Source: Octopus bimaculoides
Lineage: Eukaryota
NCBI RefSeq assembly: GCF_001194135.2
Contig: NC_068983.1
Location: forward strand, 16,174,635-16,212,872
Direction: 5' to 3'
DNA length: 38,238 nucleotides
The notes under the pieces were generated by a model. That model was given only the letters and a program-made list of their open reading frames with translations. It did no database searches and was not told where the DNA came from. Positions 44 through 30,652 of this stretch are shown here, in pieces (positions within the stretch are counted from its first letter, which is position 1; each line of letters starts with the position of its first letter). Both the position numbers and the translations under genes were made by a program.

Positions 44-110
<67 letters not shown>

Positions 111-227
111 GCTGATATAATATCCGAAAGTGATTACTAAGATCAACCGTGATGGATATAATACCGTAAATTTCAGACTAACAGAAGCACGAGTGAATCT
201 TTTTCTGACATGTTGTGTCTTAAACGA

Positions 228-600
228 CTCAGTCATTTGACTGTGGCCATGCTGGAGCACCGCCTTTAGTCAAGCAAATCGAACCCAGGACTTATTCTTT
301 GGAAGCCTTGTGCTTATTCTATCGGTCTCTTTTGCTGAACCGCTAAGTTACGAGGATGTAAACACACCAACATCGGTTGTCAAGAGATATTGAGAGGGGG
401 ACACAGATACACAAACATACATATATATATACATAGATACGACGGGCTTCTTTCAGTTTCCGTCTACCAAATCCACTCACAAGGCTTAGGTCGGCCCGAG
501 GCTATAGTAGAAGACACTTGCTCACGGTGCCACGCAGTGGGAATGAACCCGGAACCATGTGGTTGGTAAGCAAGCTACTTACCACACAGCCACTCCTGCA
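228..600 (-). mobile_element. tRNA-derived SINE, family 'B' (internal TA/CA microsatellite)
   Basis: Head with A-box TGGCTGTGTGG and B-box GGTTCATTCCC on the minus strand. Related copies at 20695-21310 (+), 26310-26520 and 26870-27000 (-), and 28290-28360 (+). Confidence 0.8.
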
Positions 601-659
601 AGTTATATATATATCCGACAGATTTATTATTTTCCTTTTTCTCGCATTTTTCTGATCTA

Positions 660-786
660 CAGGGTGTCCACAAAGTCTGGGTACATGGGGATTAACACAT
701 ACTTTAAAAAATTATTATTTCTTATTTTTAATTGTTTATGTTATGATTTTATTTACTCCATGTACCCAGACTTTGTGGACACCCTG
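660..786. mobile_element. 127-bp Tc1/mariner-type MITE
   Basis: Perfect 29-bp TIR CAGGGTGTCCACAAAGTCTGGGTACATGG (660-688 / 758-786). TA on the left, CA on the right (altered TA). Confidence 0.85.
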
Positions 787-2602
787 CATAATGAAAACGA
801 AAATCTTCAATTTCCATTTAAAGGATTAAAAACATAAAAATCAATTTCTTAATTCAACAATCAATGGGAGATAACTCTGCTACTACTGGTTCACTAACGT
901 CGAATTTCAGGTGTTTATATCCGTTTCTAAATCAGTCATGATCAGATCGCAGCGCGCAAAACTTTCTGAAAATTACTTGTATCTTATTTTATTTCGGTTT
1001 TTATTAGTGCAGCCCGCCTGATGGTAAGTCATGTCTCATGCGAACCTTTACTCCCAAAATGTCTTTTCTAAATCTACAGCGGGAAAAGATTTTTTTTTTT
1101 AATCATGCAATGTATGGGAGATAATTGCGCTAATGCTGGTTTACCAACAGCGATTTCTGATATCTTTCATTTTTTTAATTAATTTACATTTATAACTAAT
1201 TTCCTAAAGTATACAATCAGTCAATGATGATATTCACTGCCAGTACAAAGTTAAAATTTTCTCTGTTCAAAGTTTGTCCTAAACGTCAATGCTTATTTTC
1301 CGACTTATAACTTTCGTTTCATACGTCCTGAGTAATATAAAGCTTTCCTTTCATAAGTCCTAAGTTATCTAATAGTTGAAAAAAAAATCGTAATGTGTAT
1401 CATATATAATGCCAGTGAAACACGGGTTAAAATCTGTATTATTGTATTCGTTAAATCTTTCACCGCTAATACAGCTTTCATACTGCCATATAAGTTTGCA
1501 GTCTGTCTTTTACAATAGTTTATGCCCACAGACGAAACAGCTCCCTATATTTCCTGATAACTTCTAAATTATTACTACAATCATATCCAGTAGTCACAAC
1601 TGTGATTAAGAAGTTCGTTTCTCAACCACGTGGTTTCAGTTTCAGTCCACTGCGTGACACCTGTAGTAGTATTTTCTACTATATAGCCAAGAAGCAGATC
1701 AAATAAACGTGCTTGTTAGTTCGTGCATTTCTCGTTTGGCCTGTACGTTGGTTCGTTAATTGTAAACAAACACTTTGTTTTTCAACGGTGTCATTTGCTT
1801 GCAGTCTACTGGGTAATCACATCCGGGTTTCTTGACACGCTGGACGATCTTTGTAAACAAAAGACGCATTCATTCGGTTTCAGTTGGTTCCTGGTTCCAG
1901 TTCTCCACTTAAACATGTCCAGGCTGAATCTTGTCTGATAGGCAACAAACAATATTACCTCCCATGGAAACAAGTAGGGGTTGACTACAGGAAGGGCATC
2001 TGGCCGTAGAAAACTCTGCCCCAATAAACTATCATTTGATCCATTCAAATATGGAAAAGTTGACATTAAAACAATGATGATGATGAATCACCTCCAGCCA
2101 TAATTATCCTACATAAATTAAAGAAATCAACTATCATTTTTTTAAAGCTATCTGAGTAGTTCATGAGTATTCATACTATTAACTATTCCTGTATATATTT
2201 TGCTATAAGTCCAGGTTTCTCATAAGTCTGTTAAGAATTCCATCACCTTATTTTTTTATAACACCATTGTACAGTATTGAGTTCATCCTTACACTTTTCT
2301 TACATATTCAACAAAGCCGCTTCCCAGGTGGAGAGGGGGGGGTTGTTACAAATCAAAATATTTTTGATTGTTACACTTTTTACCTTGGTACTATTCTTTT
2401 TGGATGGGTTGATGCATACAAGCATACGTGTATGTAGACAGATGGTGATGATGGTGGTGGTGGTGATGATGGTGGTGGTGTTGACAATGATGATGGTGAT
2501 GATGCTGACAATGATGAAAACAATAATGAAAACAATGACATTGATCAGGATTTTGACAGGATTTTCCAATGACCCCTTTCGTTATAAATCCAAAGAATTC
2601 AC

Positions 2603-2808
2603 CTTGAAAAGCTCTGGTTGTTCAGCAAAAACATCCTTCACATATTTGTAGTCAATGTAGGCCCAAAGTTGGTCAGGAGAGCAGTGTGACATAGACTCAG
2701 GTAGGAACTGGTTTGGTGTTGTTGCCTCACCATAGACCCAATCCAGCAGGTCATCAAGGGACACACTGTGGTGGATACTATCCTTTTCCCATTGGATTTC
2801 TGAACTTT
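2603..2808 (-). CDS. HSPBAP1: HSPBAP1-like coding exon 2 (ESSEIQWEKDSIHHSVSLDDLLDW...QLWAYIDYKYVKDVFAEQPELFK)
   Basis: tcttcttttgcag acceptor and AAG|gtgaat donor; 206 nt, phase 1/0, compatible with the preceding exon. WAYIDYKY matches HSPBAP1 WAYADYKY. I found no later JmjC exons (HxD motif) in 1-2600, so the gene continues off-window. Confidence 0.85.
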
Positions 2809-3910
2809 CTGCAAAAGAAGACAGAAAAACTGAAGCTGGTTATGATAATGGGTGGTAGTGGCAACAGGATGGTAGTAATAGTGATGGTGGTGGTTGTCAT
2901 CGTCACTGTGATAACAGGGGGGGATACTGTTGTAATGGCTGTAATGGGGGTGATACTGTGTTGTTGGCACTCCGTCGCTTACGACGACGAGGGTTCCGGT
3001 TGATCCGANNNNNNNNNNNNNNNNNNNNNNNNNNNNNNNNNNNNNNNNNNNNNNNNNNNNNNNNNNNNNNNNNNNNNNNNNNNNNNNNNNNNNNNNNNNN
3101 NNNNNNNNGTTTTGGCAGGGTTTTTACAGCTGGATGCCCTTCCTAACACCAACCACCTTATAGGGTGGGCTGAGTGCTTTTACAAGGCACCAGCACAGTA
3201 AAAAAATAAGATAGCTAACTTCTTTGATATAGCCTTGAACGTTAGCTTTGGCTTATTCTACCCATATATATATATGTATATGTGTCTCCTTGCTTTGACA
3301 TCCTGGGATAATAAACTAGCAAATGGACTCTTTCATTTCCAGTCTTCCATAAAAATTTGCTCAGCCATGTGGAAATATAAGCTTGCTAAAAATAGATAAG
3401 GGTTGGAGTCAGGGCATCCAACTGTAGAAAATATGCATCAACAAATTCCATTTGAGCCATGCTCGCATGGAAAAATGGTTGTTAAAACGGTAACCTTGAT
3501 GATGATGATGATGATATTATACCTTTCTTAGTTTTGTCTGAATGTTGTCCAGGTGAGTGATTGCAAGTCTGTTTAATTATATTCTCCATTTAATCAGTTA
3601 TGTTCATTGAATGCTATTGAGATATCATACCCAAGATATTTGATGTTACCTAGAATTTTATATTTTTTAAATGATGTGATGTGAGATATAATTGGTTACT
3701 GTTGTTTAGTCTAAGGTTAGCACAGTTGAGATCTAAGTTTATGATGAAAGGCATTCCAGTCACAATGATCCTATTTTTTGTATATTGGGAGTTATATTAT
3801 CCAATGTAGCCTTCTTTACAGAAGATGGTAGAGTATGAGTTAAAGGAGTTTTGGTTGCTATTTCTAGCAAGTTAAGTATCTGGCAAGAGTCTCTCACTTG
3901 GTGTTTTTAT

Positions 3911-4318
3911 CCCTTTTGTTACCATTGTGGCAATTAAATTTGAAAATAATAGAGTTTAGTAAAATAATTTTAATTATTAAGCTGGTATTTGGAACATAAA
4001 TTGATTTCAAATTCTGGCACAAGGCCAGCAATTTCAGGGGAGGGTATCAATTACATCAATACCAGTGTTCAATTGGTACTTATTTTATCAACTCCAAAAG
4101 GATGAAAGGCAAAGTCAACCCCTGCAGCATATGAACTCTAAAGGTAAAGTCAGAAGAAATGCTACAAAGCAATTTTTCTGGTGCAATAATGATTCTGCCA
4201 GACACCACCTTTATTTGGAATAGAGATTAACAAGAAACTTTGATAGAAGATTCTAATTCGTATCTCTTTAAAACAGGAAGAATCAGAGGCAGTCTCAGGT
4301 AGGTTGGTATCAAAGGGG
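3911..4318. mobile_element. piggyBac-type MITE with a nested family 'C' SINE
   Basis: CCCTTTTGTTACC ... GGTATCAAAGGGG ends. The body resembles 13119-13410; SINE insert at ~4015-4205. Confidence 0.65.
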
Positions 4319-4417
4319 TTTAAAGTGTGATTACCTGTCTGGCTTAGTCAATGACAAGTAAGTTATTTAGTAAACATTGAGGTAGGTGAGGAAGCTGATA
4401 TCCTTTGCAGTACTTAC

Positions 4418-4634
4418 CTTGAAAACAAGGAAGACAACCCAGTCTACACGTGACTGACTTCCCATTCAATAATTTAGCCAGATGACGTGGTTTCCATGAT
4501 GAGGCTGGCCAGTGTGAAATCATGTTACAGAACACTAATGGTCTATTTAATGTAGAAGATTCCACAAGATGTGATGTTGTCAGAATATCCTTTCTACTCT
4601 CTGCAATCCTATTTAGACAGACATTTCCATCCAT
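4418..4634 (-). CDS. HSPBAP1: HSPBAP1-like JmjC protein, first coding exon (MDGNV...LNRPLVFCNMISHWPASSWKPRHLAKLLNGKSVTCRLG..)
   Basis: PLVFCNMISHWPA..W...L..LLNGK resembles the HSPBAP1 segment PAIFCNMVFDWPARHWNAKYLSQVLHGK. Acceptor tttttctctag lies 15 nt before the ATG (exon starts 4649); CAAG|gtaagt donor, phase 1. Confidence 0.8.
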
Positions 4635-5187
4635 AATTCGTTCAATACTCTAGAGAAAAATAAGAACATCATTGGTTTTTAAATCAATCTTTTTGATACA
4701 ATATGGGCGCAACATAGTCACTTGACTTGATTTTAGAATATAATAGTGTTTGAATAAAAAATATAAAAAGAAGTGAGTCCTCTGGATATTACTGCCTTGA
4801 GTCTTAGGACTCATATGGCAGATTATTCAGTTCCCTTGGCATATAAGTGACCAGGATCACAAGATTCCCACTGAATGGGATTCAGGGTTACTCATTTACG
4901 ACTGAGAAGACTGGAACAATGCAAGATAAAGTGTTTTGCTCAAGAACTCAACACACCACCTGGTTAAGAAATTGAAACCACAATCATGCAATTGTAAGTA
5001 CAACACTAGGCCATGTGCCTTCACAATTAATTACAGGCAGAGATTTACTTTGTGTTTAATTTTATATACAGATAAAAGACAAAGTTGACTCCTTATCTCA
5101 GTGGGATTTCATATATCATTATAGCTAAAAGCAGAAACAGATTTTCTGTTAGTAAAATACAGTCCAGCAGCTAAGTTTGTCTCATAC

Positions 5188-5263
5188 CTGTTGACATTAC
5201 AGAAATTCTGTTCTCTTTATCTATTTTTGGTTCTCAAACAATAAATCTCATTTTTGCAGTGGC
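5188..5263 (-). other. Candidate non-coding 5' UTR exon of the HSPBAP1-like gene
   Basis: On the minus strand: ttcatttaag acceptor, 76 nt, strong CAG|gtatga donor. An in-frame TAA leaves ATG 4634 as the start. No transcript evidence. Confidence 0.35.
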
Positions 5264-5499
5264 CTTAAATGAATCAATGTTTTATATTAAAATGAAAAAA
5301 TCAGTGAGACCCATTCACTTGCTAAAATATTAATGTTACTCCAAGTGCAATATTTTAAGCATAAATGTTCTCATTTTCCTAAATGAATGGAGTACCAGAG
5401 ACTAACAGTGTCTTTTCATACACTGTCGCAACATAGTTTACATGAAGTCTTCAATTTTATTTTATTTCACCATAAACTCTATGCATTTGATAATATGGA

Positions 5500-5890
5500 T
5501 CACTTAAAGTGGATGGAACTTGTGGAAGAGCAAGATCCAGGAAGACACGGGATGAAGTACTGAAGGCCTATTTCAAGGCACTGAGCCTTACAAAACAGAT
5601 GACAAAGGACAAAGATATCTGGCGCCTTGCTATACTCAATAAGACTTGCACACCATTGCAGAACTGATATCCGAAACCACCTTGGTTAATGCTCCAAGCT
5701 GAAGAGGGCTTTGTCTTGCGAATTACTTGGTAACCCTGTCGGTGCTGGTTGCACATAAAAGACCTGTACCAATGCCATGTAAAAGGCACCTCTACCAGTG
5801 TCACGTAAACAGCACCTGTGTCGATGCCATATATAAAGCATCTGTGCTGGTACCATGTAAAAAGCACCCAGTACACTCTGTAAAGTGGTT
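5500..5890 (+). mobile_element. RTE-clade LINE 3' fragment (ORF end plus repetitive 3' UTR)
   Basis: 5500-5667 reads SLKVDGTCGRARSRKTRDEVLKAYFKALSL..MTKDKDIWRLA, a decayed RTE GxxGRGRPRKTW C-terminus. It is followed by tandem ccatgtaaaaagcacc units. Confidence 0.8.
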
Positions 5891-6108
5891 CAGCAGTTAA
5901 ACTGACCATAAATATTCTACCTCTTTTATAGATATTTTCGATCTAGTTTGGATTCTTTGCAATCAAATTTGAATTTTTCAAAGGAACTTTGTAAGACAAG
6001 CTAAAACGCAGAAAACGGTAGAAAGTAGGAGTCTCCATCCCCGAAAGAATATTCGATGACCACAAATCAATTCGAAGCTACTTCCCCGAAATTGGTGCTC
6101 AAGCCTTG

Positions 6109-6146
<38 letters not shown>

Positions 6147-6753
6147 TCAAACTACGTCAGCCATAAGGGAATACATGTCTGTCTTATTTAACTCGTCCAA
6201 TGGAGCCCACTGTTACTCGAACTTCGATCTAACCCTGAGCGTGGGACAACAAACTCGAGTTGGATAAACTCGAATAGTAAGCTCTTTAATCTTTATAACT
6301 GTTTTATGAAGTCACTTTTTTTTGTTAAAAAACTGTTCAATTTGTAGCTCCTCAAAGCGAAAGGGCTGGTTCTTTTAATGTCACTTTTGGGTAAAGTTCG
6401 AATAGAAAGCCCAAATAGCATAGTTCTTGAAGGAAAACTCTGCAGCTATCAAGAACTTATGAGCATTACTTTTGCATAATACTATTACTAACAGCAATTC
6501 ACCATACGTAGGCATAAAGGAAAAAAATGAGCTCATACTAATCCTGATATCAAGACCTGCCTGAATGTGTCCACGTGTTATCCAAGACACGTGCATGCCA
6601 TGTACAACAGACAGTCTAGTTAAGACATACCACAGGGGGAGGAAGGATGTAGCATAAACCCGCGCTTTAAAGCAATTTTATGCAATTTTGGGGGGAGGGG
6701 GAGGGGTGAAATTACCCTTATGATCAGCAATTGTTGATTTAAATCAAACAAGG

Positions 6754-6759
6754 TTTATT
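6754..6759 (-). terminator. AATAAA poly(A) signal downstream of the transposase
   Basis: About 100 nt after the TGA and just inside the left TIR. Confidence 0.4.
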
Positions 6760-6858
6760 AGCTATCCTGAGATAAGGCTTTTTAAATTTTCCCAACTGAT
6801 ATTTCTCGAAAAAAAGTTGCAGTTTGTGAAAATGTATAAATTATTTTGAATGAACAGT

Positions 6859-7533
6859 TCAAGCATACGCAAAAAATAGAGAAAGAATGATCTCCGCTTG
6901 TTCAGACAGGTCGACGCAACGGAGCATCTTTTGGTAGAAGCTATCGTAGTGTTCAGGAGTTATTTCATCAAACTTTTCAGATATCAATTGGTAAAGCTCC
7001 GGCTCGTTCTTTGCCTCGCCTTGGATAACCGAGTGTTTCCAAACGGAGAAAATGTTCTCAATTGGGTTTAGGAAAGGCGAATATGGAGGCAGAAAGAACA
7101 TGGTAATGCCAAGTTCCTTAATAGTATCTGCCAGTCCATGATAATGGTGGATCCTGGCGTTATCAAGGATGAAGACAGGATTGTTGGTTTCGTTGTGGGT
7201 GCACCGTTGGTGAATCTCGATCAAACATTCTTTGAACCTTTCTCCGTTTATGTCCGTTTCAAAAACTTGATGAAAAATCATCCCATATCGATTCATGGCT
7301 GCAACAACCGAGATATTTCGGCTGCGTGCAGCCGGAACAGAGATATATAGGGAGTTTCCGAACTGGGCTCGCCCCTTTCTAGGACACGTCACCACTGCAA
7401 ACTCCACTTCGTCGAGGAACACAAAGTTTCGGTCGTATAAATCCTCTGATCGTTGGCAAAACAATTGAGCATATTCCATTCGCAGGTTCAAAGCCCGTTC
7501 ATTGTTTCTCTTCATAGGAACTGTAACGAGAGC
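6859..7533 (-). CDS. Transposase exon 2, DDE catalytic domain, DD34E spacing
   Basis: ttttcatttaag acceptor, phase 0. Motifs FLDEVEF, FILDNARIH and FLPPYSPFLNPIE, with 34 residues between D and E; TGA at 6859. Spliced product is 343 aa. Confidence 0.9.
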   Translation of the reverse strand, partial: ALVTVPMKRNNERALNLRMEYAQLFCQRSEDLYDRNFVFLDEVEFAVVTCPRKGRAQFGNSLYISVPAARSRNISVVAAMNRYGMIFHQVFETDINGERFKECLIEIHQRCTHNETNNPVFILDNARIHHYHGLADTIKELGITMFFLPPYSPFLNPIENIFSVWKHSVIQGEAKNEPELYQLISEKFDEITPEHYDSFYQKMLRCVDLSEQAEIILSLFFAYA

Positions 7534-7743
7534 CTTAAATGAAAAACAGACATGTAAGTGCAAAAACTAAGTGAAATTATAATTTTCTAACTGGCCATAG
7601 TGAATGAAAACCGACTGCGGTTGTATACATGAAATGTGGCAAACCTCTGCATATGTCATTTTCTATTGTTTAAATTCTTATTTCAATGAATACGTTCCCA
7701 CCTCTCTCAAAGAATAAAACGATAAAGGAATGAAAGGGCATAC

Positions 7744-8100
7744 CTTCAATGTGTAGTGGAATTCTTTCAGTACCCTGTCAACACAGCTGATGCTGACTTT
7801 GACTCCGAGCTCCTCTTGAACACGGGATTTGATGTCTTGCAGACGTAGTAAGCAATTAGCATCTACCCATGACAAGATGATCTCTTTCTGTTCATGTGTG
7901 AGAATAGATCTCTTGTCTCCGCCTCTTTTTCTGGCAGCAGAAGAACCAGTCTCGTTGAAACGTTTGATTATGTTCCAAACAGTGGTGTATTTAAGGGAAA
8001 AATGTCGTGCGATATCCTTTACACCCATTCCGGAGCGTGATTTTTCGCAAATTCTTCTTCGTTTGTCGTCGGAAATCTGGGTATAAATCTTTCGGTTCAT
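7744..8100 (-). CDS. Transposase exon 1, HTH DNA-binding region (MNRKIYTQISDDKRRRIC...KDIARHFSLKYTTVWNIIKRF...EFHYTLK)
   Basis: ATG at 8100; paired-like HTH pattern and KRGG linker; AAG|gtatgc donor, phase 0; 119 codons. Confidence 0.85.
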
Positions 8101-8184
8101 GACGAAAATTGAGAGCGTATGTATGCAATGAGCAGAAAAGTTAAATGTAATTGGACAATCAGGACCATCAGCTTTGAATACAAA

Positions 8185-8191
8185 TTTTATA
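8185..8191 (-). promoter_or_regulatory. TATA box (TATAAAA) upstream of the transposase
   Basis: About 90 nt upstream of ATG 8100 on the minus strand. Short motif in AT-rich DNA, supported only by its position. Confidence 0.4.
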
Positions 8192-9897
8192 ATGAACGGG
8201 CTGATAAACATACACGCGTTGTCATTTCACCATTCCCACGTGGACGCATTCAGGCAGGTCGTTATATCAGGATTAGTATGAGCTCATTTTTTTCTTTATG
8301 CCTACGTATGGTGAATTGCTCTTAGTAATAGTATTATGCAAAAGTAATGCTCATAAGTTCTTGATAGCTGCAGAGTTTTCATTCGAGAACTATGCTATTT
8401 GAACTTTATCCAAGAATGACCTTAAAAGAACCAGTCTGTTCACTTTGAGGAGCTGCAAATTGAACAATTTTTTAACAAAAAAAATTGACTTCATAAAACG
8501 GTTAGAATGAGCAAAGAGCGTACTATTCGAGTTTATCCAACTCGAGTTTGTTGTCCCAAACTCAGGGTTAGATCGAAGTTCGAGTAACAGTGGGCTCTAC
8601 TGGACGAGTTAGATAAGATAGACATGTATTCCCTTACGGCTGATGTAGTTTGATTTTTCTTTCTTTTTTTTTTTTTTTTTTTTCTCAAGGCTTGAGCACC
8701 AATTTCGAGAAACTAGCTTCGAATCGATTTGTGGTCATCGAATATTCTTTCGAGGATGAAAACTCCTACTTTCTACCGTTTGCAAACACTTCAGCGCATG
8801 CCTGTTGACCGTTTTCTGCGTTTTAGCTTGTCTAACAAAGTCCCTTTGAAAAATTCAAATTTGATTCAATTTGCAAAAAATTCGGATCTATTTTAAAACG
8901 GGGGCCACAGTTTTCATTAATGTTTTACGTAGTGTTTTTGGTACCGAAAGACTTTCAAACTTCGTATACTTATCTATTTTGTGTTATAGAACAGAAAAAT
9001 ATTTTTGTATTCCAATTTATTTCATGTNNNNNNNNNNGGTACCGAAAGACTTTCAAACTTCGTATACTTATCTATTTTGTGTTATAGAACAGAAAAATAT
9101 TTTTGTATTCCAATTTATTTCATGTAAAAAATTGTCTTATTTCGATAATTTCAACCAATCACTGACAAGTATTCAGTTGTTTGCAAAAAATTCAAATTTG
9201 ATTGCAAAGAATTCAAACTAGATCGAAATCATCGATAAGTTCAAACTAGCGAGAACTGGTTTCTCACATCTCCCCTACAATGTTATTCCAAAAATAGATA
9301 ATCACATCAATGGAATCTCGAAGCTACGAGATAATGCAGGATTAATTCAAAATGATGTGAATAAATAAACTTTAGATTTGATAACGTAGGCAGAAATATT
9401 TAGCTGCAATAGTTTCAGCAACTTCACTTAAGTCGATATTTTTACGAACAGAATGAATGTCTCAGTCTCTCATATTTCCTTAATATATAAATGCAAGGTA
9501 ATCAACCTCTGCGTGATTGTTTGACCACTAGAAGTTGCTACCACATCTCTCAAATAACACCCTACTGTTTTGGTAAAAAAGAAGAGGACACACTAAATAA
9601 TGTTGTCTTATATACCCCTAAAAGGACGGGTTGGTCACGGGTGGAATATCTCTGACCGTACATCTCTTTAACCATAGTTAATCTGGGCAAAAATTTTATA
9701 CATAAAATTGTTGAAGAACAGCAATATTTCGGATAAACAATTAAAACCACCAAACAAAGGAATCCAGTACAACAAATAGCATCGGTATACATACAAGAAG
9801 TGTGGAAATATTTAGGTTTTGTAAAATTATTTACTGTTTTTGCAGATGTGGAATTGAGTTCTTCCCTCTTAAAAGATGTAAACAAATAAGTAGAGGT

Positions 9898-14724: not shown

Positions 14725-15239
14725 GTAATACAACTTTTGTTTCGTATTTTACAGAGAGCAAGAGGGAGGGGGTGGAGGAATGGAGTATCATCATTGCTTA
14801 TGAAATAATTAGATAGCTGAAAAAAGATAGCAGGTGTTTTGGGTCACAGAGGAACCTGAAATTCAATAGAATTTTAGAGCTTCCATTGGTCAAATGAACT
14901 GTGCCTCTGCACATGTATGCACAGACCTGAGGATGATCGACAGTTTCCCATGCATGAGAATTCTCTGTTGCACACTATATCTGATTCTTATTATGCTCGT
15001 TTTTTTTCACATCTCGTTGTACTTCATCATTCATGTATTTTAGCATCCAGAGAAGTCTGCTTGCTTCATTTCTTTCCAGCTGTTTCATCTCCCCATTTGC
15101 TGCAAATGTTTTAGCATGTATTAATGCTTCATCAGTGACTCAGTACTCACATTTTCTCCACATATACTCAAACACACGCACGCATGTCAGATTCATATAT
15201 ATTATAAAAAACCTGTATTTTGTTTCCATCTATTTCCAG

Positions 15240-15386
15240 TCAGGATGGACACCTCTCATGATAGCAGTGTCTGCTGGTCGTCCAAAGATTGTCAACAGCC
15301 TTATTCACCGTAGGGCTGACATCAATGCTGTCAACAACAATGGCCAATGTTCTTTACACTATGCAGTCTCTAAAAACAGATATGAG
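15240..15386 (+). CDS. PSMD10: PSMD10 coding exon 3 (SGWTPLMIAVSAGR...QCSLHYAVSKNRYE)
   Basis: tatttccag acceptor and GAG|gtaata donor; 147 nt, phase 0/0. Ankyrin repeats matching human AGWSPLHIAASAGR...CTPLHYAASKNRHE. Confidence 0.95.
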
Positions 15387-16239
15387 GTAATATATTGATG
15401 CTCACAATGTTTGTTTCACAGTCGCAAGGTCCCATGTTTAATCCTACTCTGCATTGTCTTAAGCATGCATCTTTTTGCCATACTTTCAGGTCAGTCTCAA
15501 CCCTGGGAATTAAATTGGGGAGACAGTGAGTGACAATGCTGAATTTTAAAAATTACAAGTAGAGTTCATTTGAAGAGCATCCAACTGGTTCAGCTTGAAG
15601 AGTATGTTAATAGTAAACGTTTCAATGGAATACTTAGCCACCAACACATTAACCTTTCATTTCCTGTACAATAGAGTACTGTACAGAATTGCATGCAACA
15701 TGTGATATCACAAGAAATGTACTAACCTTGTTTATAAGAAGGAAATGTGGAACTTTCTAATATAAGGGGAAAAAACTCTTATCCCGTTTCTATCATTCAT
15801 TTCTGTTTTTTATTGGAATCCTTACAGAATTGGGCTTTTGACTTCGTACACTTTCAGCAGGATGTTATGAATTAATTCAGTTGAGCCAAATAGCTGAACA
15901 CTCATCCTCAATACCATTGAAGATCTGTTTTATTTATGAGTGGATACAATGTATTATGGGTATGCTTTTTTGATGTGTGTGTAACCTGTAGATTGCAGAA
16001 TATTACTTGATTCCAGTTGCTGCTATGATAAGATATTTTTGAAGTGTCTGTTCATAGAGGATGCAAATCTCTTCTGAATGGTATTAGATTTAGATGACAT
16101 CTGATGACAGAAAAATACTGGAAAGTGTTGCAACGTATTATTTGTTGCCTTTATCATATTCATTTATTATATAACCTGAAGGTAATTCCAGATAGACAGT
16201 CCGCTTAAATATTATTTTGGTTTGTTTTTTTTTTAACAG

Positions 16240-17096: not shown

Positions 17097-17728
17097 CATC
17101 ATCATCATCATCATCGTTTAACGTCCGCTTTCCATGCTAGCATGGGTTGGACAATTTGACTGAGGACTGGTGAAACCGGATGGCAACACCAGGCTCCAAT
17201 CTAATTTGGCAGAGTTTCTACAGCTGGATGCCCTTCCTAACGCCAACCACTCAGAGAGTGTAGTGGGTGCTTTTACGTGTCACCCGCACGAAAACGTCCA
17301 CGCTCGAAATGGTGTCTTTTATGTGCCACCCGCACAAGANNNNNNNNNNNNNNNNNNNNNNNNNNNNNNNNNNNNNNNNNNNNNNNNNNNNNNNNNNNNN
17401 NNNNNNNNNNNNNNNNNNNNNNNNNNNNNNNNNNNNNNNNNNNNNNNNNNNNNNNNNNNNNNNNNNNNNNNNNNNNNNNNNNNNNNNNNNNNNNNNNNNN
17501 NNNNNNNNNNNNNNNNNNNNNNNNNNNNNNNCGCCTCGGTGAGGCCCAATGTTCGAAGGTCTTGCCTCACCACCTCAGCCTAGGTCTTCCTGGGCCTACC
17601 TCTTCCACGGGTTCCCTCAACTGTCAGGGAGTGGCACTTTTTCACGCAGCTATCCTCATTCATTCTCACCACATGTCCAAACCAGCGCAATCGTCTCTCT
17701 TGCACACCACTACTGATGCTTCTTCAGT
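17097..17728 (-). mobile_element. 5'-truncated RTE LINE spanning an N-gap, ending in a (GAT)n tail
   Basis: 17532-17728 reads QERRLRWFGHVVRM...EGTRGRGRPRKT*AEVVRQDL. 17097-17339 is a 3' UTR-like segment ending GGAAAGCGGACGTTAAACGATGATGAT. Confidence 0.85.
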
Positions 17729-22370: not shown

Positions 22371-22575
22371 CCTTTTAGCATCTGGCCCAAATATTCTACA
22401 TGTTTTATGTTTAAACTGGCTAGATCCAGCATCTCACACCTACCCAACAATGTCATTCTAAAACTATACAAGCACATCATCAAAATCACAAAGCGACAAG
22501 ATAATGCATGATTAATTCAAAGCAATGTGAATAAATAAGCTTAACATTTAAGAAAGTAATTTGAGCCTTCAAGGG
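22371..22575. mobile_element. piggyBac-type MITE, second family
   Basis: TTAA-CCTTTT ... AAGGG-TTAA. The internal segment is shared with 9255-9385. Confidence 0.7.
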
Positions 22576-23644
22576 TTAAGGCATGGGTGCACCAAGCAAT
22601 TGCCCAGGGCCCTCATGGGTCTATGGGTCCAATTCTGATCCATATATGCTAAATAGTATAGGGCCCAGTGCATTGATTTGCCCTGGAGCTCATAATACTG
22701 TTAAGACAGCCCTGCATAGAGATCAAGTTTGCTATCGTCTCACCTACAAAATTCCATACATAGAGATTCGGAATGTGATTTTTTATTTATTTACATTTAA
22801 TTAAGGAAGAAGAGCAACATCAATGACTCATTTTTTTTTTCACTTCCTCCAAGATTGATGGGAGGAAGTTATCCTCAAACCTCATACCAGGCCTGACCGC
22901 TTATAACAGAGTTTACTCTGCTAAAGAAACCAAAGAACCAAACAGTGACGTTAAATCTGATAAAAGATTAAGTCTACCACCCAAGAGTTGTATCAAATAC
23001 TGCAAAGCATCTTGTCTAAAATTCTAGCAGTTTCGTTAACCCACTATTCTAGACTGGTACTTTATTTTATAAAACCTACAGGGATAAAAAGAAAAATTGA
23101 TCTCAATCAAATTTGAAGTTGGAGCATAAAGAAGCGGCTGGTTGGGCTGTTTCAGAAGAGATGGATTATCACCAGATTTGTATTCAAAAATATTGGTTGT
23201 TAATCTGTGTGGTTACCACATAAAATGCATCCTTGCTGTTGCCATGTAAAAAGCTCCCATGCCTGCGCCACGTAATAGCTCTAGTGGTGGTGCCACATAA
23301 AAAACACCATTTTGTAAAGTGGTTGGTTTTAGGAAGGGCATCTGATATATTGTTTATGCATACTTTGATTTCTCTCTCTCTCTCTCTGCTACTCACTTCT
23401 TTCTCCTAGATATCAATTTTTTGTTGATTTATATCAGCCCCCATTAGTATATACTTTATCAGTCTCAGAAATATGAAAGACCAAGTGAACCTGCTGTCAA
23501 GTATTCAGTCAAATGTTTTTTAATTTCTTGCTTTTTTAAAAATTTTTATTTAATTTCATTTTTTGTAACAGCCCCTGGTCATCTCTGATCAAAATACATC
23601 CCATCTTTTTTTTCTTCACACAACATATATCAAGGATTACACTG

Positions 23645-29357: not shown

Positions 29358-30652
29358 NNNNNNNNNNNNNNNNNNNNNNNNNNNNNNNNNNNNNNNNNNN
29401 NNNNNNNNNNNNNNNNNNNNNNNNNNNNNNNNNNNNNNNNNNNNNNNNNNNNNNNNNNNNNNNNNNNNNNNNNNNNNNNNNNNNNNNNNNNNNNNNNNNN
29501 NNNNNNNNNNNNNNNNNNNNNNNNNNNNNNNNNNNNNNNNNNNNNNNNNNNNNNNNNNNNNNNNNNNNNNNNNNNNNNNNNNNNNNNNNNNNNNNNNNNN
29601 NNNNNNNNNNNNNNNNNNNNNNNNNNNNNNNNNNNNNNNNNNNNNNNNNNNNNNNNNNNNNNNNNNNNATATATAATGGACTCTCCCATCAGACAACATA
29701 TGAGGTTTCGATAATTTCTTACCGAACTACACAGATGATTTGTTTATAGTGATCAAATGTTTGTGTAGACATAAGGTCACTCCCTCCATCAAATCGACAT
29801 TACCTGTACAAGCGCAACTGGGTGCTACATGTCAGATGTCGAAATGATCGCCGAGCAACATGAAATGAAGTGCTTTGCTCAAGAACACAAAGCAACATCC
29901 AGGCTGGGAATCGAACCCATTATCTCACAATCATGAGTGCAACATCCTAACCACTAAGCCATATATATATATATAGATCATCATCATCATCATCGTTGTT
30001 TAATGTCCATATATATATACACACACACATATAGTTTACTTCAATATATATATATGGCATTGGAAAAGGCAATCAGCCATAAAAAATCATGCCAAAACAG
30101 ATATTGGAGCTTGGCACTTTCTTTTGGCCCACCAGCTCCTGTCAAGCAATCTAACACATGCCACCATGGAAAATGGATGTTAAACAATGATGATGTGTGT
30201 GTATATGTATATATGTTTGTGTGTGTGTATGTTTATTCGTAGGCACAGTGATACCGTTATGAAGTTCATTTCACAGCCATATGGTTTCAGATGAGTTGCC
30301 AATGTGTGGCACCATCATCAAGTGTCTGCTAAAAAAGCCCTGGGCCAATCAATGCCTCATGAATAAATTGTTAGACAGCAAAATGGAGGAAATCCTATTG
30401 AGTGTTTCTGTATTGACCTTGTCACCACTCATAGAAACAGTGACATTTGTTTACAATACTCTGTGTAAACATTGAGTAGTCTGTTGTTTGAAGTAGTAAG
30501 ATAAATATTACTTAGCTTGGAAATTGATGAGGAGAGATAACACAAAGAGTGACCTGTTATAGAAAAAAATCAACCTCAACATGTATTGTCTGCTTCTCGC
30601 AAGTATAGAAATGTGAATACTGAACAATGATAATGATAGAAATTATAGGATA

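Follow-up and report, generated by a model that had tools for sequence, protein, structure and literature searches.

Tc1 and Tc3 both carry an intron, the terminal inverted repeats (TIRs) of Tc3 are about 460 bp long, and those of the Tec elements of Euplotes are about 700 bp long. The paired motifs of the inverted repeat/direct repeat (IR/DR) arrangement in Sleeping Beauty lie about 165-170 nt apart. Minos, a Tc1-like element of Drosophila hydei, has 254-bp TIRs and a 60-bp intron (PMC2874221). Gambol elements of Anopheles and Schmidtea have a DD34E triad and transposases of 337-372 aa (reference table, bioRxiv 10.1101/2025.11.06.686975), while the TLEWI genes of pteriomorph bivalves have a DD36E triad, no TIRs, 2-5 introns and the character of domesticated genes (bioRxiv 10.1101/656579). 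A microsporidian Mariner/Tc1 group has been placed outside Tc1, mariner and maT, clustering with a cyanobacterial sequence (Parisot et al. 2014, PMC4202319). Here we analyse a 38,238-nt stretch of Octopus bimaculoides contig NC_068983.1 (the window, to which all coordinates refer unless a relative's locus is named). Positions 5929-9235 of the window are a single insertion of a DNA transposon (class II, cut-and-paste) from the IS630/Tc1/mariner (ITm) superfamily, with a transposase gene that has one probable intron and lies between TIR arms of about 650 nt.

Minos has the same overall architecture of TIRs plus an intron but belongs to a different protein lineage, and the TIRs and the intron of the window element are about 2.5 and 3.5 times longer, respectively. 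The original prediction had suggested that this combination may mark an undescribed cephalopod lineage. Because precedents such as Minos exist in the superfamily, an intron with long TIRs is not a new architecture, and the combination is new only relative to the element's nearest relatives. Bacterial IS630 elements share the DD34E spacing, the FLPPYSPxxNPIE motif, the TA target and a full-length match to the profile NF033545. They differ from the window element in its eukaryotic context, spliceosomal-type intron, eukaryotic flanking repeats and far longer TIRs, and its single frame has no frameshift of the kind seen in some IS630. Sleeping Beauty and other IR/DR-type Tc1 elements resemble it in having two same-orientation motifs per arm, a paired-like domain and DD34E, whereas the Sleeping Beauty protein (unverified sequence, trimmed alignment) is 22.9% identical and the motifs in the left arm of the window element are 286 nt apart. 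TLEWI is similar as a molluscan-type ITm transposase gene with GT..AG introns; the window element has a DD34E rather than a DD36E triad, TIRs, a target-site duplication and one intron. Gambol, compared by description only, shares DD34E and a transposase length range that includes the 343 aa found here.

Insertion of the element at a TA dinucleotide

The strongest evidence for the boundaries is an alignment to a paralogous empty site. When we removed the unit together with one TA, joined the left flank to the right flank and aligned the product within the window, it matched 22389-22549 over 161 ungapped nt at 78% identity; the match extends for 19 nt on the left side of the junction and for 142 nt on its right side. 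Because this paralogue is colinear with the joined flanks, 5929-9235 entered a dispersed repeat as one unit with a duplicated TA. The features that define the insertion are:

5927-5928 (no strand): left copy of the TA target-site duplication, adjoining the left tip; a single TA stands at the paralogous empty site
9236-9237 (no strand): right copy of the TA target-site duplication, following the right tip
22389-22549 (plus strand): paralogous empty site, a dispersed-repeat copy colinear with the left flank, one TA and the right flank

The element measures 3307 nt as assembled and 3209 nt when the overlap at an assembly gap in its right arm is collapsed. Besides the TA duplication, seen as one TA per side against only one in the empty site, it has the other ITm characters, namely TIRs, a transposase with a DDE/D RNase-H fold and an N-terminal paired-like helix-turn-helix region. 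We saw no second copy of the element elsewhere in the 38-kb window. A compact element nested in a foldback miniature inverted-repeat transposable element was considered and rejected: where the arms end on their inner side we found no nested TIR, TA or target-site duplication, and the conserved tip of the family stands at the outer end.

The host repeat copy is represented by the left flank at 5629-5928 and the right flank at 9238-9537, and the second copy, 78% identical, lies 13 kb away. Tandem sub-repeats of 26 nt (consensus AAAAGCACCTGTGCCGATACCATATA) occupy 5757-5868 just left of the insertion, and similar pieces occur at 23205-23259, 3151-3198 and 17245-17289. They look like part of an abundant repeat resembling short interspersed nuclear elements, and presumably resemble octopus repeats.

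Transposase gene and protein

The element carries one gene on the minus strand, made up of two open reading frames (ORFs) separated by a 210-nt interval:

8100-7744 (minus strand): exon 1, 357 nt, residues 1-119, paired-like bipartite helix-turn-helix DNA-binding domain
8100-8098 (minus strand): ATG start codon
7743-7534 (minus strand): probable spliceosomal intron, 210 nt, phase 0, GTATGC...TTTAAG, with donor AAG/GTATGC and pyrimidine-rich tract and acceptor TGTCTGTTTTTCATTTAAG/G
7533-6859 (minus strand): exon 2, 675 nt including TGA, residues 120-343, DDE catalytic domain
7413-7411, 7164-7162 and 7059-7057 (minus strand): codons of the catalytic residues D160, D243 and E278
8191-8186 (minus strand): TATAAA, possible promoter element, 91 nt upstream of the ATG; 0.9 per kb per strand in the window, weak evidence
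6759-6754 (minus strand): AATAAA, possible poly(A) signal, 100 nt past the stop; 1.2 per kb per strand in the window, weak evidence

The spliced product is a 343-aa protein with the junction EFHYTLK/ALVTVPMKRN, and both exons are free of stops and frameshifts. Its triad of D160, D243 and E278 has 34 residues between the second Asp and the Glu (DD34E), the spacing that also characterises the Tc1 family. Pfam returned DDE_3 at 1.3e-28, and HTH_32, HTH_23, HTH_SB and PAX over the first 120 residues. An AlphaFold model built from an 18-sequence alignment had a mean predicted local distance difference test score of 79.8. From a Foldseek search with this model, we retrieved the Mos1 transpososome at 6e-14 and the catalytic domains of Mos1, SETMAR and Sleeping Beauty at about 1e-9 (1.8e-9 for Sleeping Beauty), the three domains having target-normalised template-modelling scores of 0.72-0.79; the N-terminus matched the paired domains of Pax5 and Pax6. 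The catalytic domain, in the C-terminal region, has an RNase-H fold and bears the DD34E triad.

In the public protein set this protein is represented only by an 80-aa piece from its C-terminus, a UniRef/MetaClust singleton (P0200) identical to the last 80 residues (window 6859-7101, minus strand), so the public annotation of the locus is a fragment. The spliced 343-aa product was absent from the protein collections, and the spliced model would correct this mis-annotation. Searching by exact match for six variants of the exon ORFs and for the C-terminal ORF of 80 aa, in order to find further copies, gave nothing usable.

The TATA and AATAAA hexamers that the original prediction regarded as in place are indeed present, but because each occurs about once per kb per strand they are merely consistent with a gene. 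An in-frame ATG at 8211 (8101-8211, minus strand, with no stop between) would add 37 N-terminal residues. It is probably unused, since the TATAAA at 8191 is downstream of it and the extension has no counterpart in the homologues, which have a short N-terminus.

The 210-nt interval in the transposase gene

The interval has a G+C content of 33%, compared with 44% in the exons. Between the two ORFs there are 51 possible in-frame GT..AG joins, so that joinability alone is unremarkable; the join at 7743/7534 is the only one of the 51 that gives a product colinear with the homologues. Across this junction the spliced protein aligns without a gap with 17 uninterrupted homologues, which bears out, at the level of the sequence, the prediction that the two ORFs are joined by a 210-nt phase-0 GT-AG interval into a 343-aa transposase. 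The donor AAG/GTATGC is the best among the joins and agrees with the consensus from position -3 to +3 and again at +5. The AlphaFold model places residues 117-120, and with them the junction, in an interdomain linker of low confidence. Reading through into the interval meets a stop after 21 codons and yields a 140-aa protein, and an alternative acceptor at 7567 would give a product longer by 11 residues.

We compared the interval with four loci of relatives, one from Octopus sinensis (L001), two from ENA assembly ERZ25067582 (L002 and L003) and one from a Logan contig (L004, which is frameshifted and has no insert). We distinctly favour a lineage-specific gain of a spliceosomal intron over a disabling insertion, as the colinearity and the splice-site features suggest. 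The possibility that the interval is a mobile introner or a duplicated piece of exon was also considered and rejected, because we found no terminal repeats in it and no other copy of it, or match to it, in the window.

Terminal inverted repeats and tips

The arms pair as follows:

5929-6583 (plus strand): left TIR arm, about 655 nt, inverted-repeat pairs I1-I6; its tip TAGATATTTTCGATCTAG fits the tip consensus of the relatives
8231-8866 (minus strand): inner part of the right TIR arm, pairing with left-arm 5961-6583; inner TTCGATCTA at 8569-8577; 33-nt insert relative to the left arm
9186-9235 (minus strand): outermost 50 nt of the right arm, pairing with left-arm 5929-5978; outer TTCGATCTA at 9219-9227
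5937-5945 (plus strand): left-arm outer copy of TTCGATCTA, candidate site for transposase binding; four in the window, all in the arms, 0.09 expected
6223-6231 (plus strand): inner TTCGATCTA motif of the left arm, 286 nt inward of the outer motif
6109-6143 (plus strand): 35-nt A run, mirrored by an interrupted T run at 8654-8683 of the right arm
8867-9185 (no strand): extra right-arm segment without a left-arm counterpart, flanked by the 18-nt direct repeat AAAAATTCAAATTTGATT (8849-8866 and 9186-9203)

Aligned over 628 nt, the arms (left 5929 to about 6583; right about 8231 to 8866 plus 9186-9235) have 92.5% identity and differ by indels of 4 to 33 nt. Together with the triad, the TA duplication and the empty site, this upholds the earlier description of the element as a DD34E ITm transposon with TIRs of about 650 bp. 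The right arm is about 1005 nt long as assembled, owing to the extra 319 nt and the 33-nt insert. Because the left A run is mirrored by the right-arm T run, the homopolymer is part of the inverted repeat itself.

The left end of the element reads TA/TAGATATTTTCGATC, and the ends of relatives read TA/TAGGGTTTTCGGATC, TA/TAGGGTTTCCCGATC and TA/TAGAGTTTCCCGACC. Since the left end matches the conserved tip of the relatives (TA/TAGGGTTTYCSGAYC), the tips are cognate to the transposase encoded between them. Over its outermost 50 nt the right arm agrees with the left tip at 92-98%, and TA adjoins this stretch; the right tip itself (reverse complement TCGATGATTTCGATC) has three mismatches to the left tip within its first 7 nt. 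Tandem Repeats Finder detected two 21-nt-type units retained at the tip, and the arms are otherwise expanded and mostly unique.

The 9-mer TTCGATCTA occurs four times in the 38 kb, against 0.09 expected. All four copies lie in the arms, two per arm, in the same orientation and symmetrically placed. This position and recurrence suggest an outer and an inner candidate transposase-binding site in each arm, in an IR/DR-like arrangement.

Relatives and classification

The best full-length match to the protein was 55% identical (ENA), and the best match over exon 2 was 64% identical (in a collection of 5.8 billion protein clusters). No protein above 55% full-length identity was found in the 5.8-billion-cluster collection. 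Named matches came from the microsporidia Cucumispora, Dictyocoela and Hamiltosporidium, from Marteilia pararefringens and from Octopus sinensis (47%), with more distant ones from Hydra and a mite. An exhaustive HMMER search through 1.84 billion cluster representatives produced 8,979 matches at E<=1e-3, of which 147 reached E<=1e-30; among full-length representatives the best came from Marteilia (44%). Members of the clade occur in an octopus and in eukaryotic assemblies as well as in parasites of aquatic invertebrates, namely microsporidia that infect amphipods and Daphnia, and Marteilia, which infects bivalves; this patchy distribution suggests horizontal transfer. A viral vector was considered and rejected: IMG/VR viral contigs contained no close relative and yielded only distant IS630-like genes at 22-30% identity, or at up to 47% over about 50 residues.

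The nearest relatives, including Octopus sinensis LOC115231855, are 44-55% identical over the full length and 64% over exon 2. They have in common with the window element the TA duplication, the tip consensus TAG(G/A)(G/T)(T/A)TTYCSGAYC, the DD34E spacing and the FLPPYSPFLNPIE motif. The three with readable ends occupy these positions of their own loci:

L001, 3793-5207: element of Octopus sinensis
L002, about 3751-5080: element from ENA assembly ERZ25067582
L003, about 90-5300: second element from the same assembly

Their TIRs are 70-210 nt long and consist of 3-9 tandem 21-nt units, and the L001 and L002 elements are about 1.3-1.45 kb long. The window element, in contrast, measures 3.2-3.3 kb and has mostly unique arms of about 650 nt and one intron, which the four relatives' loci do not have. 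Because the relatives examined are compact and intronless with short tandem-unit TIRs, the intron and the ~650-bp arms appear to be lineage-specific. In Octopus sinensis the 21-nt TIR unit reads, for example, TTTTCGAATCAATATAATAAT, and in L003 a retrotransposon (RVT_1, protease) apparently lies between the arms.

The LDE.. and FLPPYSPFLNPIE motifs had been read as IS630-like, and the comparison with bacterial proteins agrees with this. Bacterial IS630 transposases have DD34E and read FIDETGA and FLPPYSPDFNPIE at these motifs, and plasmid-borne ones matched the transposase at 26-29% identity over 82-91% of the protein with E-values down to 9e-28. Matches to the SB100X and Mos1 PDB chains reached E-values of only about 1e-3 (SB100X chain 5CR4, 1.6e-3 over 78 residues). 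The bacterial matches include cyanobacteria. The NCBIfam profile NF033545 (IS630) scored 158.8 bits over profile positions 5-298 of 299, passing its equivalog cut-off of 100 bits. We do not take this match as proof of likeness to IS630; it is not discriminating, as an unverified sequence of Sleeping Beauty scored 130.7 bits, which passes the cut-off too, and Mos1 scored 78.7 bits.

We built a neighbour-joining tree of 56 sequences (335 columns, 200 bootstraps) that included three real bacterial IS630 transposases and unverified sequences of Sleeping Beauty and Mos1. The eukaryote/metagenome clade that contains the element had 64% support. It joined the three bacterial IS630 in 44.5% of bootstraps, the deep nodes being weak, and joined Sleeping Beauty (the sole Tc1 reference) to the exclusion of IS630 in 1.5%. 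These results favour an IS630-like placement, in which the bacterial IS630 are closer to the element than Sleeping Beauty and Mos1 are, but they resolve it only weakly. The element is not a compact insertion sequence in a prokaryotic genome, as bacterial IS630 are, given its GT..AG intron, ~650-nt arms and eukaryote-type scaffold. Its clade and the microsporidian group of Parisot et al. may be the same, although the two are likened by description only. Judged from these comparisons, the element is best regarded as a new lineage within a very well-known transposon class and not as a new kind of element; the clade to which it belongs is poorly characterised.

The extra right-arm segment and the assembly gap

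The extra segment begins 50 nt from the right tip and is 319 nt long as assembled, or about 221 nt with the gap overlap collapsed. Within it lies an assembly gap (9028-9037) bordered on either side by a copy of one 88-nt sequence (8940-9027 and 9038-9125), the two copies being 100% identical; Tandem Repeats Finder reported the region as two copies with a 98-nt period. The duplicated 88 nt look like the unmerged overlap of two contig ends, and a genuine tandem duplication is less likely. The gap lies outside the gene, in non-coding right-arm DNA about 930 nt from the start codon, and therefore the frame, intron and protein are unaffected.

At the start of the 319-nt segment, TTCGGATCTATTTTA (8873-8895, plus strand) stands in the orientation opposite to that of the right-arm motifs and matches GATCTATTTTA of the L002 terminal unit. 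Either a vestige of another end or a 21-nt unit that was rearranged could explain it.

Alternative explanations

The reading of the interval as an intron has to be weighed against the possibility that it is a disabling insertion in a dead copy, with fortuitous GT..AG ends, so that a full-length transposase is never made. All relatives examined are uninterrupted at this position, chance GT..AG joins are numerous, and the copy is damaged elsewhere (the extra right-arm segment, the tip mismatches and the substitutions at conserved positions). However, removing exactly the GT..AG interval restores both the frame and gapless colinearity and leaves no target duplication or deletion behind, the donor fits the consensus and a pyrimidine-rich tract lies before the acceptor, neither terminal repeats nor a second copy in the window were found for the interval, and both exons are intact. 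We consider a disabling insertion unlikely. Much less probable still is that the right end is an assembly artefact or chimera, with the true end near 8890 at the inner tip-like sequence and 9186-9235 derived from another fragment of the same transposon family. Such an error could account for a gap inside the anomalous segment and for the tip-like stretch at 8873-8890 (reverse complement TAGATCCGAATTTTTTGC...), with which the left tip pairs in a global alignment. This inner sequence is not followed by TA, whereas the outer 50 nt match the left tip and have TA next to them, and the flanks are colinear with the empty-site paralogue only if the unit ends at 9235. The anomalous junctions (8866/8867 and 9185/9186) also lie inside contigs, away from the gap, and the contig ends share 88 identical nt.

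It might also be asked whether the gene is not a transposon gene at all but a transposase co-opted by the host, like the intron-bearing TLEWI genes, which show that molluscan Tc1-like genes can gain introns (bioRxiv 10.1101/656579). An intron and an intact frame in a possibly low-copy element are what such domestication might leave. A transposon insertion is nevertheless evident from the empty-site paralogue, the duplicated TA and the arms of about 650 nt, the triad is DD34E rather than DD36E, and there is one intron rather than 2-5. Of the explanations considered we regard domestication as the most improbable, with hardly any weight.

State of this copy and a possible history

The original prediction described the cassette as complete. 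This is too strong, since the right arm is disrupted, the tips are mismatched and seven of 84 conserved positions of the protein are substituted. We defined conserved positions as those that are the same in at least 85% of 24 clade relatives. The relatives deviate at 2-18 of these positions, so the seven deviations of the window protein are mid-range; they include G163E, three residues after the first catalytic Asp, and R169C. Because of the extra right-arm segment of about 220-320 nt, the mutated right tip and the substitutions including G163E, the copy is probably impaired or immobile as it stands. No stop or frameshift has entered the coding sequence, even though the divergence between the arms amounts to 7.5% of positions plus several indels. 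Had the two arms started out identical at insertion and then undergone neutral decay, the coding sequence should have acquired indels too. We infer that the arms already differed in the source element, or that the copy is younger than the divergence of its arms suggests.

The features described above show that the element inserted at a TA inside an existing dispersed repeat and duplicated the TA. Its one minus-strand gene encodes a 343-aa transposase composed of a paired-like DNA-binding part and a catalytic part. With the intron in the linker between these parts, production of the full-length transposase would depend on splicing by the host, while the unspliced message would encode a 140-aa protein with only the DNA-binding domain, which could compete for the ends. 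The transposase would bind the outer and inner TTCGATCTA sites of each arm, pair the ends, cut and reinsert the element at TA.

Put together, the element could represent a recently active, autonomous IS630-like DD34E lineage that gained an interdomain intron, expanded its ends into IR/DR-like arms of about 650 nt and became dependent on splicing. We hold this combined reading only tentatively and think it improbable in full. Several observations weigh against the main reading, that of an inserted transposon copy with a spliceosomal intron, which we hold to be likely. The right arm is disrupted and holds an assembly gap; the acceptor is AAG rather than the commoner YAG; the interval is missing from all four of the relatives' loci examined, and the full-length homologues are uninterrupted frames. 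Only one copy is visible within the window, the protein deviates at seven of 84 clade-conserved positions, and the role of the putative binding motif is read solely from its position and recurrence.

If the lineage was recently active, intron retention might supply a built-in 140-aa repressor, as in the regulation of P elements. If the family is intact and spliced in its host, it would be a case of lineage-specific intron gain in a mobile DNA transposon, given that no intron is present in its closest relatives. It would also add an animal branch to a patchy clade with microsporidia and Marteilia, useful for the study of horizontal transfer, and provide a further candidate transposase for invertebrate genetics. 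The suggestion that the element could serve as a native transgenesis tool is weakened: transgenic cuttlefish have already been obtained with Minos and with Sleeping Beauty (bioRxiv 10.64898/2026.09.23.753964). Because these heterologous transposons work in cuttlefish and the present copy has defects, its practical value is limited.

Other features of the window

The scaffold is a gapped, short-read-type eukaryotic assembly. The window contains four runs of N, of which the three outside the element lie at 3009-3108, 17340-17531 and 29358-29668. No Rfam families were found in the window. Microsatellites of the TA/TG type are abundant at 25.7-33.5 kb, where ORFs read YIYIYI.. and CVCVCV... An ORF at 15033-15398 (plus strand) contains an ankyrin-repeat exon (..GWTPLMIAVSAGRPKIVNSLIHRRADINAVNNNGQCSLHYAVSKNRYE..), for which the only database match was a 47-aa Logan fragment at 98% identity. 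It probably belongs to a host gene about 6 kb from the element.

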